NCBI GenBank assembly: GCA_002269645.1
Contig: NIVC01005200.1
Span: 1-21,869 of the forward strand
DNA: 21,869 bases
Reading direction: 5' to 3'
Source of the DNA: Macrostomum lignano
Taxonomy: Eukaryota
Shown piece after piece: positions 230 through 21,869 of the stretch; position 1 is the first letter of the stretch; each line of letters starts with the position of its first letter. Under the pieces are notes generated by a model. The model had not been told where the DNA came from. It saw only the letters and a program-made list of their open reading frames with translations, and searched no databases. The position numbers and the translations under genes were made by a program.

Positions 230-1459
230 TCATATCAATGTTATTTTACGAAACAAAGGTTTATATTAAATTAGCACCGGCTTTTACATAAGCAACATTA
301 ATTACATTAGTAACATTTTAATTACATTAGCAACAACAGGTTACTTAGCAACATTAATTACATTAGCAACAACAGGTTACTTAGCAACATTAATTACATT
401 AGCAACAACAGGTTACTTAGCAACATTAATTACATTAGCAACAACAGGCTACTCAGCAACAACAGGTTACTCAGCAACGACGAGTTACTTAGCAACAACA
501 GGTTACTTAGCAACGACAGGTTACTTAGCAACGACAGGTTACTTAGCAACGACGAGTTACTTAGCAACGACGAGTTACTTAGCAACGACGAGTTACTTAG
601 CAACGACAGGTTACTTAGCAACGACGAGTTACTTAGCAACGACAGGTTACTTAGCAACGACGAGTTACTTAGCAACGACGAGTTACTTAGCAACGACAGG
701 TTACTTAGCAACGACGAGTTACTTAGCAACGACAGGTTACTTAGCAACGACGAGTTACTTAGCAACGACAGGTTACTTAGCAACGACGAGTTACTTAGCA
801 ACGACAGGTTACTTAGCAACAACAACGTCAGTCCAATTCGCTTCCAATTTTGCAGCAGCTTGATTTCGCTGCAAGAAGCCGCTCTAACCATCGGAAGAAT
901 GATCCTGATCAGCACCGGAAGTTACATGCGCAGTGCCGGAAACTTCTACGAAAGTCTTCTAACTGGCAGATTAGCGGTAGACGACGTCCTTAGCCAGGAG
1001 CTGCTCCTACACGACGTGTATCCGCTGCTGCTCAGCTCGCCGACAAGTTTCATTCAAGGAGCCAAATCTTGCAATGCCTGGTGGAAGATTAAACTGAGTT
1101 TACAGCGAATGTTCGAATTTAGAATAGCACCGCTGCTCAGTACAAAACTGTCGCACACGGTGTTTCTACTGCTGCTGCGAGTCATCCAGAATGGCCGACA
1201 AGAGATGCTGGTCTTTGTCTGCCTACTGATGGTGAACCTGCGGCGTAGGGAACGCTTGAACTTGCTGATGTCTCTGCCGAAGCTGGCGCTGTGCCACGTG
1301 GCTGTACTGGTGCTGGTGCTTGTTATTGTCAACTTCGTCACTTCCGTGGAGATGTTCTAAGCTTCCGCCTGTATGGACTGTTTTGTAACATTGAGTGACT
1401 TGTTACCGTCTAATTTTATTGGAGGGGGCCGCAATCCGTAGGATTTTTCTAATCTGAGG
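230..1459 (-). CDS. Candidate terminal exon, ~410 codons: His/Gln-rich region followed by VAKQPV/VAKQLV repeats (table 6)
   Basis: Frame has no TGA from 1459 to the TGA at 232-230. Unique part reads ...HQHQYSHVAQRQLRQRHQQVQAFPTPQVHHQ(TAG)ADKDQHLLSAILDDSQQQ(TAG)KHRVRQ...EQQRIHVV(TAG)EQLLAK..., with in-frame TAR at 884, 959, 971, 1007, 1100, 1166, 1223 and 1403. Candidate acceptor gtgcacacag|CCT at 1460/1459. The acceptor and the 3' end (2-nt irregularity at ~316-319) are uncertain. Confidence 0.55.
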
Positions 1460-3863: not shown

Positions 3864-5511
3864 GGCTTGTGAGCAGCAAGTGAACCAAATGACGGATGCA
3901 GCGGCGAGATCAGAATGCTCGCTGCTGATCGTTAAAGCGCATTCTTGTCTCTTAGGCATGTCGCTGGCGTTGCTGACTTCAGAAGCTGCGAGGAAAAGAA
4001 ATCAATTAAGATAGGCTTGCTTTAGTAATCATTAATAGGCTATAAAGGAACCCTTTAATAGAACGTGTTCAACTAATGCTGGGTCTGTTTTGAAAAGTCA
4101 GAACTCAGAAGTAGTCGCGATTAGAATCAGTATTGTCCCAATAAGTGCGACCCAACAAATGCTGTTCAAAAAATAGGCCTGGCTGCAATGTCCCAATAAA
4201 TGCCCAACAAATTACTAGCCTTGAGCTAGGCTGGGCTGTGTTTACTATTCTTTGCGTTTGTATAGCTTGTGTCCCAACAATGCCACTGAGATTGTTGCAT
4301 TGCTTTTGAATTGTGCTCTACCAGGTAACACAAGTACTCTGGTGTACAATACTTCTACAGCAGATAATACTCACCCAAAACAGATCGTCTCTTTCTCTTT
4401 AATCCTGTGCCAGACGGGTTATCTTCAGATCCACCAGAAAATTCACAAATAGACTGACTGCCTGCACGGATAGCGGCTGCTGCTGCTGCTTTTCTTTCTT
4501 TCTTTCTTTTTCGGGTCACGGACATTGTAGCTAGACGTAGCTAATAGGACCGGGGGCGTAGCCCCATGCAGCCGGGGCGCTGACCCTGCGCGGGCGGGCA
4601 GTAGACGGCGGAATCCAATTTGCGGCCTGCGGCGGGTGGCCAGAGAGCGTGGGGACCCGAGTCCCGGTGCGCAGGGCTCCTCCGCAGACCGACTTACGCT
4701 GTAAAAACCGCCATCCACCGCCAACCCAACGTTGGGGGACAGCTCTCCCAGGCTGCATACCCGGAGGTGAGACCAATTCGTCACCCCGTCGATGGCAGGG
4801 ACGCACGGAGCTCCTGCCACATTGGCGGGGTGTCCAGGGGCGCGACGTGGACGCTGGTCTCGTGCCACCCGCTGCTGCTGCTGCTGCTGCCGCTGCTGCT
4901 GCGGCTTGTGAGCAGCAAGTGAACCAAATGACGGATGCAGCGGCGAGATCAGAATGCTCGCTGCTGATCGTTAAAGCGCATTCTTGTCTCTTAGGCATGT
5001 CGCTGGCGTTGCTGACTTCAGAAGCTGCGAGGAAAAGAAATCAATTAAGATAGGCTTGCTTTAGTAATCATTAATAGGCTATAAAGGAACCCTTTAATAG
5101 AACGTGTTCAACTAATGCTGGGTCTGTTTTGAAAAGTCAGAACTCAGAAGTAGTCGCGATTAGAATCAGTATTGTCCCAATAAGTGCGACCCAACAAATG
5201 CTGTTCAAAAAATAGGCCTGGCTGCAATGTCCCAATAAATGCCCAACAAATTACTAGCCTTGAGCTAGGCTGGGCTGTGTTTACTATTCATTGCGTTTGT
5301 AGCTTGTGTCCCAACAATGCCACTGAGATTGTTGCATTGCTTTTGAATTGTGCTCTACCAGGTAACACAAGTACTCTGGTGTACAATACTTCTACAGCAG
5401 ATAATACTCACCCAAAACAGATCGTCTCTTTCTCTTTAATCCTGTGCCAGACGGGTTTTCTTCAGATCCACCAGAAAATTCACAAATAGACTGACTGCCT
5501 GCACGGATAGC

Positions 5512-16427: not shown

Positions 16428-16465
<38 letters not shown>

Positions 16466-16625
16466 GACAGACAGACAAACACAGACACACACAGACAGAC
16501 AAACACACACACAGATAGACAGACACACAGACAGGCAGACAGACACACAGACAGACGCAGACAACAGATACAGCAGCACAGACACACAGACAACGCAACA
16601 ACAGACAGACAACAGACAGACAGAG
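16428..16625. repeat. Compound (CA)n/(CAGA)n microsatellite
   Basis: Pure (CA)n at 16428-16460, followed by degenerate CAGA/CA repeats. Confidence 0.95.
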
Positions 16626-17149: not shown

Positions 17150-17983
17150 AAGCTACCTAAAACTCTACCCAACTACAGCAAAACCTACCTAAATCTTACC
17201 CTAATTACAGCAAAAGCACCGTAATCAGAATTACAGCAGAAGATACCTAAATCTCACCCTAATTACAGCAGAAGCTACCTAAATCTCACCCTAATTACAG
17301 CAGAAGCTACCTAAATCTCACCCTAATTACAGCAACCTACCTAAATCTCAGCTTGATTACAACAAAACCGACTTAAATCCCACTCTAATTACAGCAAAAG
17401 CTACCTAAATCTCGGCCTGATTACAGCAAAACCTACCTAAATCTCTCCTAGTTACAACAAAGCTACCTAAATCTCATCCTAGTTACACAAAGGCTACCTA
17501 AATCTCATCCTAATTACAGCAAAAGCTACCTAAATCTCATCCTAGTTACAACAAGCTACCTAAATCTCACTCTAATTACAGCAAAAGCTACCTAAAATCT
17601 CGGCCTCCCTGATTTACAGCAAAGCTACCAAAATCTCACTCTAATTACAGCAAAAGCTACCTAAATCTCACTCTAATTACAGCAAAAGCTACCTAAATCT
17701 CACTCTAATTACAGCAAAAGCCAACAAAATCTCACTCTAATTACAGCAAAAGCTACCTAAATCTCACTCTAATTACAGCAAAAGCTACCTAAATCTCACT
17801 CTAATTACAGCAAAGCTACCTAAATCTCACTCTAATTACAGCAAAAGCTACCTAAATCTCACTCTTAATTACAGCAAAAAGCTACCTAAATCTCACTCTA
17901 ATTACAGCAAAAAGCTACCTAAATCTCGGCCTGATTACAGCAAAAGCTACCTAAATCTCACTCTAATTACAGCAAAGCTACCT
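17150..17983. repeat. ~32-bp minisatellite (caaaagctacctaaatctcactctaattacag), ~26 copies
   Basis: Period 32 (ctaattacag at 17641 and 17673). More degenerate at the left end. Confidence 0.96.
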
Positions 17984-18020: not shown

Positions 18021-18348
18021 GTATCAGGGGCGGGTTTAGTGGAGTATCAGGGCGGGTTTAGTGGAGTATCAGAGGCGGGTTTAGTGGAGTATCAGGGGCG
18101 GGTTTAGTGGAGTATCAGGGGCGGGTTTAGTGGAGTATCAGGGGCGGGTTTAGTGGAGTATCAGAGGCGGGTTTAGTGGAGTATCAGAGGCGGGTTTAGT
18201 GGAGTATCAGGGGCGGGTTTAGTGGAGTATCAGAGCGGGTTTAGTGGAGTATCAGAGGCGGGTTTAGTGGAGTATCAGAGGCGGGTTTAGTGGAGTATCA
18301 GAGGCAGGTTTAGTGGAGTATCAAGGGCGGGTTTAAGGGAGTATCAGG
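18021..18348. repeat. G-rich 23-bp minisatellite (gtggagtatcagRggcgggttta), left part, ~14 copies
   Basis: Directly visible; ends at the transposon left end. Confidence 0.96.
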
Positions 18349-21300
18349 CATAGTTGCCACCCAGTTTTTAAAGAAAAGTAGCGCAAGGACTAATTTTTAG
18401 CGCAGGTCTTAAAAAACTCGCATCCTTCCCACAAACCAGTTTTTCTTTTCACTATGACAGACATTTAGTAAATTCGAAAACAAAAATGGTTTACATGTAC
18501 AAGGAAAATTGTTTCAAGTTGCGCAGACAAAAATAAAAAGAAGCACCTCAGACAATAAAGACTACAGCATGAAGCTTAGAGTTATAGTTACTACAAACAT
18601 TCAGTAAATTTTAAGCTGATAAAATGTACAAACATAGTCATTTCTTCTTCTTCTTTGATTTTGCTTCTTCACTGTCACCATGCCGCTTGCGTAGGGCATG
18701 CTCCTCCTTATCAGCAAGTGCGAGCATGTCCTGAGCCTTCTTGCGCATTTCGTCAATCTTTGTTTGGGCCTTTGCCTGCTTTTGTTGCTTCTGCTGCTGG
18801 AGCTCTTTCTCCTTTTCAGTAACCAGTCGTCGCTGCTCCTCCAGTGCTTGCTGAAGTCGCTTCATGGCCTTTTCGTTTTGCTTAGCTCGTCGTCGCTCAT
18901 CGGCTTTGCTTTTGGCTTGAAAAGCTGTGTCCAGCAGGTTAGAATCAATAGTGACCTTGGCTGGGCCAGTGCTGTTGCATTTCATCCAAACTTTCACAGC
19001 CAAAATCGAGTCCAGCGTAACTTCTCCTAGCCTATTGCGCTGCTTGGTCAAGTTGTTGGCCACCCATTTCAAAACTCGTTCACTATCTGCATTACCGTGC
19101 GGTATGCAGCAGGCAGCACGACCTAGTTTAGAAAGATGAGGATAATCTTCAACAGAAAGCTGTGCCCAAAAAGCCTCTGGTGTCTCCTTTGCTTTCTCAG
19201 TTGGGCAGGTCAGTCGAAGCCTTGTAGCTTCCAGCCGGATATTATCCAGCAAGTCGGCAGAAATGACTGTGCTCATAGCACGCCCAACACGTAGAATGCT
19301 GTTGTCAAAGTTGAAGTCTGATCCCAACATGTATTCAGGATCCACAAACTGAAGGCCAGAAAGCACCTTGTTGTTGAAAGGTAAGTAGGCAAACAGTCGA
19401 CTAATAATTTCAGAAAAGAAGCAGCGAACTGACTTAAAAAAGCCAATCTGCTCCATCTGACGTAACGTGCAACAGTCTCACGGGTGGCCGAGCCGATGAT
19501 TAGATCTTTGTTCATTAGTTGATTGTTGCGATCAGTAGCCCTGTCAACCAGGTCTGAAAGAGAGCGGCTGTTTTCAACAACTTCACTCGCATGAAGCAAA
19601 GAAGAATGTCACTAAAAAGCTTTTCCAGCGAAGAAGCCAAGTGGTGAACCTGAGTGCTCTCCCGCTGAAAAATTTTCTCGAATGCTTCGCATCTTGGCAG
19701 CACTTGGCTTAAGAACTGGAGCTTGGCTAGCATCTCATCAGTAAGGGCCAGCTTGATTCGTCGTGCCCGAATGTTGTCCAGTTCTGAGGCACTAGCTTTC
19801 TCAAAGTGCAGCTTCAGGGCCTCCCATTGCTCTAGAATCCGTCGAATGACGTTTAGAATCTGGAGCCAGCGAGTTTCGACTCGGCGGATGAACACGTGTT
19901 CAGCCAGGTCCAGTGCATCCTGAATCTAAAAATTTTAATTTTGTCAGGGAAGAAAAGCACATTCAAGATTAAGCAAAGTTTAAATTCATACCTCATGGAA
20001 TGCTCCGCGCCTTTTCACAAATCGGAAATAGTTATAGACATCATCCATCAGTCCTTCAGCCTCGCCAGTGCTGTCAAATGCTTAGTTGCATATTGAACAC
20101 TATTATGTACATGATGGAGACTGCAGCCTCCAACATAATAAGCTGCGGCATAGCATCTTTCAGCTTGGTGAGAAGTCCATTGTGGATGCCTGAAATGTGA
20201 AAGGTGAATTATTTTAGGGACAGGATCTTTGTCAACAAGGATTACTCATCAAGCTATCTCGCATACCTCTCATTGCATTGCAGGAATCTGTCATCACGGA
20301 AATAACATTCCTTGCAGGCAATTTGGCTTGGGATAGCAACGACAAAACTGTGTCCTTCATATTTGACGCCGATGAATTTTAAGCTCCTCTGAACCAATGT
20401 AGACAAGAATTGCCTTCTGCCTTTCAATGCAGAAAGTGCGGGCCAGTAAAACCAGCCAGCAGCGGTCACGTTTCGTGCCCTCATCAAGCAGAATTGAAAA
20501 GGGAGAGTCACGAAGGCTCTTAAACATTTCCTCCTTAGCATGTGGGGCAAGTGCATCAGTGACCAGGTACGTTGTCTTGGTTCTTCCACATGAAAAGTTC
20601 TGAGCAACACTGCTATCAGGAATAGCAACAGGCAGTGTTTCAGAAATTTCGTCCATAGTTTTGAATGATAGGTCTTTCCGAACAACAAGCAGTCCGAATC
20701 GTAGGCTCGCCGCCATGGTCTGTTGGGGCAAAGATGCCTCTGCCTCCACTTTTTTAGTTGTTGGTTCTCAGATGGAGTGATTGGGAAAAAAGCATTGATT
20801 TTTTGCTGACTGTAAGCAGCAACCATAGCCCGAGAAAGAGCCTTGTGCTTTGCACCATCAGCATGTTGTCGCAAAGCAGCAATGCCATGTTGACGAAATT
20901 TACTCCACGTTGCACAATCTACATGTGGCTTCATCGTCATTGTCGTCGTCTTTCTGGCACCATCGTGATATTTTGACCCCAGAATGGTCATGTTCAGATA
21001 ACCAGGTAGCATTACACTTCGTTTTTCGATCAGTGGCATTAGAATGTGGCTGAAATGTGACTTGAATTTTATACGAGCGTAGTACCTAAACTACTACTTC
21101 CCTAGATTCCCACTTTAGTACTTTCACTACTTATACATATAATATACTTATACATAGACTTATACGTATAAGTTTATAGAGAAATATTACAAAAATAATG
21201 ACCCAAAAAGTATAGGAACAAGAATCATTTTGACCTTTCTTACTTTATTTAGAATGACTTTTAGCAATAGAAGTAAAAAATAGACAAGCAAAAAAATAAT

Positions 21301-21398: not shown

Positions 21399-21869
21399 GT
21401 ATCAGGGGCGGTTTTCAAAGTAAGTGTCAGGGGCGGGTTAGTGAGGATCGGGTTTAGTGGAGTATCAGAGGCGGGTTTAGTGAGTATCAGAGGCGGGTTT
21501 AGTGGAGTATCAGAGGCGGATTTAGTGAGTATCAGAGGCAGGTTAAGTGGAGTATCAGGGGCGGGTTTAGTAAAGTATCAGGGGCGGGTTTAAGGGATAT
21601 CAGGGCGGTTTAGAAGGAGTACTCAGAGGGGGGGGGGAGTGGAGCATCAGGCGCGAGTTTGGAGATATAAGGGCGGGTTTTAGTCGAGTATCAGGGGCGG
21701 GTTTAGGGAAGTATCAGGGCGGGTTTAGTGGAGTATCAGGGGCGGGTTTAGTGGAGTATCAGGGGCGGGTTTAGTGGAGTATCAGGGGCGGGTTATTGAG
21801 TATCAGGGGCGGGTTTAGTCGAGTATCAGGGGCGGGTTTATTGAGTATCAGGGGCGGGTTTAGTGGAGT
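21399..21869. repeat. G-rich 23-bp minisatellite, right part, running to the window end
   Basis: Same unit as 18021-18348, more degenerate. Confidence 0.96.

Follow-up and report, generated by a model that had tools for sequence, protein, structure and literature searches.

Ribozymes resembling that of hepatitis delta virus (HDV) are described at the 5' ends of R2, R1, R4, RTE, Ingi and LOA elements, and long interspersed nuclear elements (LINEs) headed by such ribozymes are documented together with derivatives that keep only both ends, known as short internally deleted elements (SIDEs) and bipartite non-autonomous LINEs (PMC3414825, PMC3774820, PMC5786205, PMC3185411). Flatworm retroposons have been linked to ribozymes of two other classes, hammerhead and twister (PMC6765202, PMC8501958), and a literature search combining Macrostomum with ribozyme returned nothing relevant. 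The subject of this report is an element in a stretch of 21,869 nucleotides of Macrostomum lignano DNA (assembly GCA_002269645.1, contig NIVC01005200.1, positions 1 to 21,869 of the forward strand), the whole of which is called the window below. A 381-bp insert in a satellite array of this window is, with good probability, a recent copy of a non-autonomous retroposon of the class without long terminal repeats (non-LTR), headed by a 102-nt HDV-like ribozyme. The reading that fits the element best is a non-autonomous derivative of a LINE with a ribozyme at its head (a SIDE or bipartite non-autonomous LINE), a further case of a described type.

The SIDEs of Drosophila R2 (Eickbush & Eickbush 2012, PMC3414825) are likewise short and non-coding, with a 5' HDV-like ribozyme that sets their 5' end from a co-transcript. 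Their 3' end is recognized by the reverse transcriptase of a LINE and they spread in trans by target-primed reverse transcription (TPRT), which for the window element is a proposal. They occupy the R2 or R1 site of 28S rDNA, however, and have ends in common with known R2 and R1 elements, whereas the window element lies in a (CAG)n tract within a satellite and has a (GAAA)n tail and an 11-bp target-site duplication (TSD), as for LINEs of the apurinic/apyrimidinic endonuclease (APE) type. In the RTE, Ingi and R2 clades, bipartite non-autonomous LINEs (Kojima 2018, PMC5786205) also combine the 5' and 3' ends of a LINE without open reading frames (ORFs), and in the same study the keeping of the true 5' end is tied to a self-cleaving ribozyme located there; membership in that group needs a parent LINE with both ends, and the window element is compared with it by its architecture. 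In trypanosomatids, the HDV-like ribozyme Pr77 heads both the autonomous LINE L1Tc and its short derivative NARTc (PMC3185411, PMC3383444), a comparable arrangement. Pr77 is, however, also an internal promoter, these elements end in poly(A), and they have no sequence similarity to the window element.

The insertion can be delimited to the base. Between about 2543 and 13900 the window consists of a 643-bp satellite in 17 units of 99-100% identity, every one of which holds a (GCT)10-15 run whose length varies by steps of 3. In most of these units a program-called ORF of 101 aa recurs. One spacing in the array is 1039 bp instead of the usual 643 bp or so, because the unit starting near 4465 holds a GC-rich insert. 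The 16 other units lack this insert and provide an empty-site comparison within the array; they read ...GATAGCGGCT(GCT)nGCGGCTTGTGAG. The GCT run amounts to 15 + 36 = 51 nt in the filled unit and to 40 nt in each neighboring unit. The excess of 11 nt is not a multiple of 3, and removal of one GCTGCTGCTGC copy leaves an in-phase run of 40 nt. Since the excess is off the triplet phase and its removal restores that phase, the flanks constitute an 11-bp TSD. The inserted DNA is then exactly 4490-4870 (381 bp), and its first base on the minus strand is G4870. An earlier note on this DNA had placed the predicted cleavage-site G at the very start of the insertion; the in-phase duplication and the 16 empty units bear this out. 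As such cases go it is unusually clean: the insertion in the satellite is very recent, its TSD is perfect and in phase, and a single array supplies the empty sites as a control. The features of the insertion are as follows.

4490..4870, minus strand: whole inserted element, 381 nt, 65% GC, non-coding and without an RNA polymerase III (pol III) head; boundaries from the TSD and the repeat phase
4871..4881, minus strand: 5' copy of the TSD, GCAGCAGCAGC on the element strand, adjoining G4870
4479..4489, minus strand: 3' copy of the TSD, adjoining A4490, placed by run length and repeat phase

The insert starts on the minus strand with GGGUGGCACGAGACCAGCGUCCACGUCGCGCCCCUGGA..., and from 4870 to 4769 it reads GGGUGGC-AC-GAGACCA-GCG-UCCACGU-CGC-GCCCCU-GG-A-(P4, 51 nt)-ACGAAU-UGGUCUC. 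As modeled, the HDV-like double-pseudoknot fold is complete at 4769-4870, and its chance origin is very unlikely. All of the elements that the earlier note had paired by hand could be placed.

4769..4870, minus strand: element nt 1-102, the HDV-like ribozyme; cleavage is predicted 5' of G4870
4864..4870, minus strand: 5' strand of P1, GGGUGGC; G1 is 4870, U4 (4867) is bulged or mismatched; pairs with 4836-4841
4855..4861, minus strand: 5' strand of P2, GAGACCA, nt 10-16; pairs with 4769-4775
4842..4854, minus strand: P3 (GCG/CGC, nt 17-19/27-29) and L3 (UCCACGU); C4850 and C4849 are the 5' strand of P1.1
4834..4841, minus strand: 3' strand of P1, GCCCCU (4836-4841), followed by GG of P1.1 (4834-4835)
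4782..4832, minus strand: P4, a long interrupted hairpin, nt 39-89, CACCCCG.../...CGGGGUG with inner UGGCAGG/CCUGCCA; -28.3 kcal/mol when folded alone
4776..4781, minus strand: J4/2, ACGAAU, with C91 (C4780) at the catalytic-cytosine position
4769..4775, minus strand: 3' strand of P2, UGGUCUC, nt 96-102

P1 is formed by nt 1-3 and 5-7 with nt 30-35 (G1.U35, G2-C34, G3-C33, G5-C32, G6-C31, C7-G30). It begins at the predicted cleavage-site G with a G.U closing pair, as the HDV-like class requires, and the helix is imperfect. The bulge at position 4 described in the earlier note is the favored register, at -37.8 kcal/mol for P1, P3 and P4 together versus -34.5 kcal/mol with a U.C mismatch. The P2 pseudoknot GAGACCA/UGGUCUC is a perfect helix of 7 Watson-Crick pairs, P1.1 is formed by C21C22 with G36G37, and J4/2 aligns with GCGAAU of the Rfam HDV consensus and with CGAAU of CPEB3. 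Both P2 and P4 are present in the minimum free energy (MFE) and centroid folds.

When 601 nt were searched against all 4227 Rfam families, the HDV_ribozyme model (RF00094) aligned end to end (model 1-89 of 89) at 4872..4768 of the minus strand, with 26.8 bits and an E-value of 0.087. The CPEB3_ribozyme model (RF00622) gave 14.4 bits (E 0.72), below its gathering score of 35, and there was no match at gathering thresholds in the searched element region. The Rfam HDV model scores neither P2 nor P1.1. As the Rfam models ignore these two helices, we wrote a descriptor that includes both, consisting of P1 with 0 or 1 bulge, P2 of at least 6 bp, P3, CC in L3, GG, P4 of at least 5 bp, and C-N-R-A. 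This descriptor finds a single site in both strands of the window, with G1 at 4870; random sequence of 5 Mb with the element's 65% GC gives 2 sites, and another 5 Mb with the composition of the window gives 0. That a GC-rich insert should resemble the HDV fold by chance might be argued from the sub-threshold Rfam match and from the readiness with which GC-rich sequence pairs. It is effectively refuted by the descriptor rate (about 4e-7 per nt at matched GC, or about 3e-4 expected for the insert on both strands), by the coincidence with the first inserted base, which adds a factor of about 1 in 381, and by an independent family (described below) whose 5' ends carry this core too and whose fold keeps its pairing.

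In its core the window ribozyme resembles the consensus of the mammalian CPEB3 ribozyme far more than it resembles HDV. The segments AGCGU(C/U)CACGUCGCG...CCCCUG and CGAAUU match the Rfam consensus of the CPEB3 ribozyme; there are 27/37 identities over P1-P3-L3-P1', P3 is the same and L3 has one base different. The CPEB3 ribozyme, in contrast, is single-copy and intronic and has a short P4, and the window element stays below the gathering score of that family, as given above. With the HDV ribozyme the window element has in common the nested double-pseudoknot topology, the G.U at the cleavage site and C-G-A-A-U in J4/2. It departs from HDV in having a different L3, a much longer P4 and the P1 bulge, and it is a genomic retroposon whereas HDV replicates as a viral rolling circle.

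There are no further copies elsewhere in the window, and a second one was met in a gene model. With a concatenated multi-frame translation of the element as query, one protein matched, UniRef100_A0A1I8HT69, a WD-repeat gene model of Macrostomum lignano. Its residues 271-347 correspond to element nt 1-63 (frame 0), 121-135 and 134-286 (frame 1), all at 100% amino-acid identity. This copy opens with GGN-TGG-CAC straight after ...QQQQQQQPQR, and KQQK then follows; it starts at G1 or within about 3 nt of it, in a tract coding for polyglutamine (polyQ), a position read from the protein only. Being collinear from nt 1 to at least nt 286, it presents the same short architecture at a second locus. A search with another frame of the element returned only A0A1I8HT69 again, plus one weak match (E 9e-4, 25 residues). 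Both known copies (2/2) are thus in CAG-type tracts, the second as a polyQ-coding tract read from protein, and this flatworm family may prefer (CAG)n tracts as a target. The microsatellite targets of retroposons in PMC3812793 and PMC4640811 are ACAY, AC, TC, TTC, TAA and TG, and (CAG)n is not among these.

A family related to the window element was found in metagenome data. The first scan, with a 28-nt CpG-tolerant ribozyme pattern, gave 0 matches; the second, with the 18-mer CAGCGTCCACGTCGCGCC, gave at least 120 loci. About half of these are chance matches in high-GC bacterial contigs, and about 57 of the loci listed belong to one repeat, from samples Ga0209149, Ga0209339, Ga0209338, Ga0209122 and others of the Joint Genome Institute (JGI). 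Its host contigs have 43% GC and encode a rhodopsin-type receptor (a 7tm_1 ORF), from which we take the host to be an animal. No repeats are common to these contigs and the window, and the family inserts at unrelated sites. Homology among the copies begins at GGTGGC (GGTGGCGAAAG...), and the upstream flanks all differ. The ribozyme of this family has P1 GGUGGC/GCCACU, P2 GUGACA/UGUCAC, GG in P1.1, G-C-N-A-A in J4/2, a J1/2 of 48 nt with an 11-bp hairpin, and P4 CCGCAGGAAUC...GAUUCC...UGCGG. P3 and L3 are the same as in the window element; the search itself fixed these two and part of P1', and their invariance does not count as evidence. Rfam gave no HDV-type match on one copy of the family even at E <= 10.

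In 33 family copies, 95.4% of the structure cells are paired, versus 27-44% when the partners are slid. Two pairs of P2 change on both sides (UA in 19 and GC in 12 copies; AU in 21 and GC in 10), and three P2 haplotypes occur, GUGACA/UGUCAC, GUUGCA/UGCAAC and GUUACA/UGUAAC. A TSD of 11-15 bp was found in 12/17 complete copies, and in 10 of those 12 it adjoins G1 with no extra base. In the metagenome family the predicted ribozyme cleavage site is the 5' end of the element to the base. The earlier note had proposed to test genomic copies for covariation and common 5' ends; both are seen in this related family, in the both-sided changes of P2 and in the TSDs next to G1. All of its copies are short, from 0.76 to 1.1 kb and typically about 0.8 kb (for example L042:1302-2129, minus strand), and they end with a hairpin, CCCCGAAGAG and tails of the (GAAA)n or (GAGAA)n type. 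One locus (L119:1984-2614) has two partial or complete copies about 190 bp apart, each after the same flank (agtaattaagtaag); the pair looks like a local duplication and not like a tandem ribozyme array.

The shortness of these copies also bears on whether the window element could be a one-off, dead-on-arrival product, namely the cDNA of an autonomous ribozyme-headed LINE that lost its interior during this single insertion and founded no propagating family. A single DNA copy is at hand, and internal deletion of LINEs is a known origin of SIDEs (PMC3414825), but the gene-model copy places an identical translated sequence, collinear over the same length, at a second locus, and the related family consists of short copies only. 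We consider a one-off product quite improbable, and a family mobilized in trans the better account. That part of the earlier description as a SINE (short interspersed nuclear element) family mobilized in trans stands on the second copy, the lack of coding capacity and the related family.

The two families are alike at their ends. Outside the search pattern they have in common the 5'-terminal GGUGGC, 8/10 of the bases that follow the 18-mer, and C-N-A-A-U in J4/2. Their 3' ends are identical at 26/30 positions (...GACCCGAA in the window versus ...CUGCCCCGAAGAG(A/G)n in the family), and the type of tail is alike. In P2, counted outward from P3, 4/6 pairs differ between the families on both strands and pairing is kept. 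There is no body similarity beyond the two ends, and a likeness in ribozyme and 3' end only is what would be expected if just the two ends were functionally required. The comparison also bears on a detail of P1. The earlier note had suggested that GCCCCU is GCCACCU with a lost base; the related family has GCCACU, of the same length, which points to a substitution instead. As judged from the aligned sequences, the window element differs by this A-to-C substitution and by one extra 5' G, and the two together make the shifted P1 register with U4 bulged possible. The extra G lies inside the insert, and the copy in the Macrostomum lignano gene model appears to carry it too.

These P2 data also bear on another explanation, in which the 5' end is set by initiation at an internal promoter and the ribozyme-like sequence is a relic or serves another role (promoter, translation or protein binding). 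Dual 5' ends that are both promoter and ribozyme are documented (PMC3383444), with the role of Pr77 in L1Tc/NARTc debated; the bulged or mismatched P1 of the window element might impair catalysis, and its read-through transcription is our inference only. Against this, compensatory changes keep P2, a helix relevant only to the RNA fold, in the related family, the P2 strands of the two families differ on both sides yet pair, and the 5' ends fall on G1 with single-base precision. We regard a promoter-defined 5' end as unlikely, and prefer an end defined by ribozyme cleavage.

Downstream of the ribozyme the element has three further features.

4566..4758, minus strand: body hairpin, long and imperfect, of about 190 nt (element nt 113-305)
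4513..4551, minus strand: 3' terminal hairpin with inner stem UAGCUA/UAGCUA, the element ending ...GACCCGAA
4490..4512, minus strand: purine-rich tail of the (GAAA)n type, GAAAAAGAAAGAAAGAAAGAAAA

The body has an MFE of -137 kcal/mol (z = -5.35 versus shuffled sequence), and its hairpin is strand-biased, with z = -4.6 in sense versus z = -2.7 in antisense and 9 G.U pairs. The terminal hairpin directly adjoins CCCGAA and the tail. In the related family the last 40 nt or so (L042, L085, L025, L088 and others) likewise fold into a hairpin, CAGACAGC-UUAA-GCUGUCUG, with a compensatory variant GGGCAGC/GCUGCCU in a subfamily. The position of this stem directly before CCCCG and the purine tail suggests that it may be conserved for recognition by a reverse transcriptase.

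The rod-like body hairpin raises the question of a circular RNA, similar to a retrozyme or viroid, from which units would be excised by ribozymes, circularized and occasionally reverse-transcribed. The insert indeed spans exactly from the predicted cleavage site to the base that would precede the next site in a multimer. Hammerhead SINE-like elements and retrozymes (Sm-alpha; PMC7229834, PMC4918200) and the Schistosoma LINEs with twister variants (PMC8501958) are also animal or flatworm retroposons with a small self-cleaving ribozyme. Their ribozymes are of another class, and retrozymes are tandem and circularizing, in contrast to the single dispersed copy with TSD and tail in the window. Neither in the window nor among the 57 or so related copies is there a tandem arrangement, each having a single ribozyme; a circular form would fold less stably than the linear form (-178 vs -185 kcal/mol); and variable purine tails with TSDs are hallmarks of TPRT of the LINE type. 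A circular RNA origin is on this evidence highly improbable, and we retain the LINE-type retroposon.

The element itself does not appear to encode a protein. Its ORFs had no match in Pfam, a protein search with its open frame returned no homologues, and exact-sequence look-ups of the window ORFs returned no record. An open frame of 126 codons was rejected as a gene, being expected by chance at 65% GC (our own estimate) and without homologues. A tRNA-derived or classical SINE was rejected as well, for want of a pol III head from tRNA, 5S or 7SL: ARAGORN found no tRNA in the element, and Rfam gave no tRNA, 5S or 7SL match even at E <= 10. Without a head of the pol III type the element is not a SINE in the strict sense, as the earlier note had called it, and SIDE or bipartite non-autonomous LINE fits better.

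The locus has the empty site, the in-phase TSD and the simple-repeat 3' tail by which a non-LTR (TPRT) insertion is recognized, and, as in SIDEs, it has no reverse transcriptase or other ORF and a 5' end at the predicted cleavage site. We propose the course that is documented for ribozyme-headed non-LTR elements. Transcription from host DNA upstream would include a genomic copy in a longer RNA. Judging from the fold and from where copies start, the ribozyme would fold co-transcriptionally and cut 5' of G1, which would remove the upstream sequence and leave an RNA with a 5'-OH. The reverse transcriptase of a partner LINE would recognize the 3' hairpin, the CCCGAA motif and the (GAAA)n tail; the partner would then nick the target, prime on the tail and copy the RNA to its 5' end by TPRT. 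A new copy would thus start at G1 between duplications of about 11 bp, the anatomy that is observed for the insertion. That the partner LINE is RTE-like is a guess, which rests on the type of tail and on an unclassified LINE-like ORF in one of the metagenome contigs. This ORF fragment (L046:1-633, plus strand) is located about 600 bp upstream of one of the family copies. Its motifs (…KLKLYNTCILRIFLYGSDCW…) are presumably those of the C-terminal part of LINE ORF2 proteins, although Pfam leaves it unclassified, and no link was found between the fragment and the 3' end of the family.

Several points weigh against a ribozyme-headed LINE derivative. The Rfam HDV score of 26.8 bits is below the gathering score of 50. 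The bulge or mismatch in P1 could weaken or abolish activity, and an internal promoter, by analogy with Pr77 of L1Tc, is possible. Two copies of the element's own family are known, one of them as protein only. No autonomous partner LINE was found in 230 kb of metagenome-host contigs by BLAST with the 3' end, a relaxed ribozyme descriptor, a regular expression for the tail motif, or ORF and Pfam analysis. Shuffled sequences reach an MFE as good as that of the ribozyme region (z = -0.71), a value that is uninformative because nested-fold energies cannot score a pseudoknot. Finally, a covariance model with the metagenome family as its only input retrieved in the window only the shared 16 nt (11.6 bits, E 0.05); with an effective sequence number of 1.12, a large J1/2 hairpin and a different P4, this model is too family-specific to test homology, and we count it neither way.

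Nothing in the window element overturns current understanding. It would extend the definition of retroposon 5' ends by ribozymes to a macrostomid flatworm, and its sister family, which is missed by current Rfam models, gives covariation support for the fold along with base-precise 5' ends. Two families alike only at their ends outline the minimal cis-requirements, a ribozyme head and a 3' hairpin with tail, and this could help to find the partner LINE. The possibly new host group, the closeness to CPEB3 and the two (CAG)n insertions are leads, not findings. It is conceivable, though we think it rather unlikely, that the window element, the metagenome family and CPEB3 form one old animal lineage, with the core GCG-U(C/U)CACGU-CGC...CCNCUGG...CGAAU. 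If that were true, a lineage of the CPEB3 type would travel as the head of (GAAA)n-tailed retroposons, and the CPEB3 ribozyme would be an exapted retroposon 5' end.

Other repeats lie outside the satellite. Window positions 284-824 hold an 18-bp minisatellite of about 28 copies, 16431-16624 an (ACAG)n tract, and 17150-17983 a 32-bp tandem array with about 26 copies. On the minus strand, 18638-21039 holds a frame-broken remnant of a hAT transposase (Pfam Dimer_Tnp_hAT); among its named relatives the best is a protein of Macrostomum lignano, with 62% identity. Two arrays, 18021-18348 and 21449-21869, bracket this remnant; both repeat one 23-bp unit (GTATCAGGGGCGGGTTTAGTGGA) and run in the same orientation.

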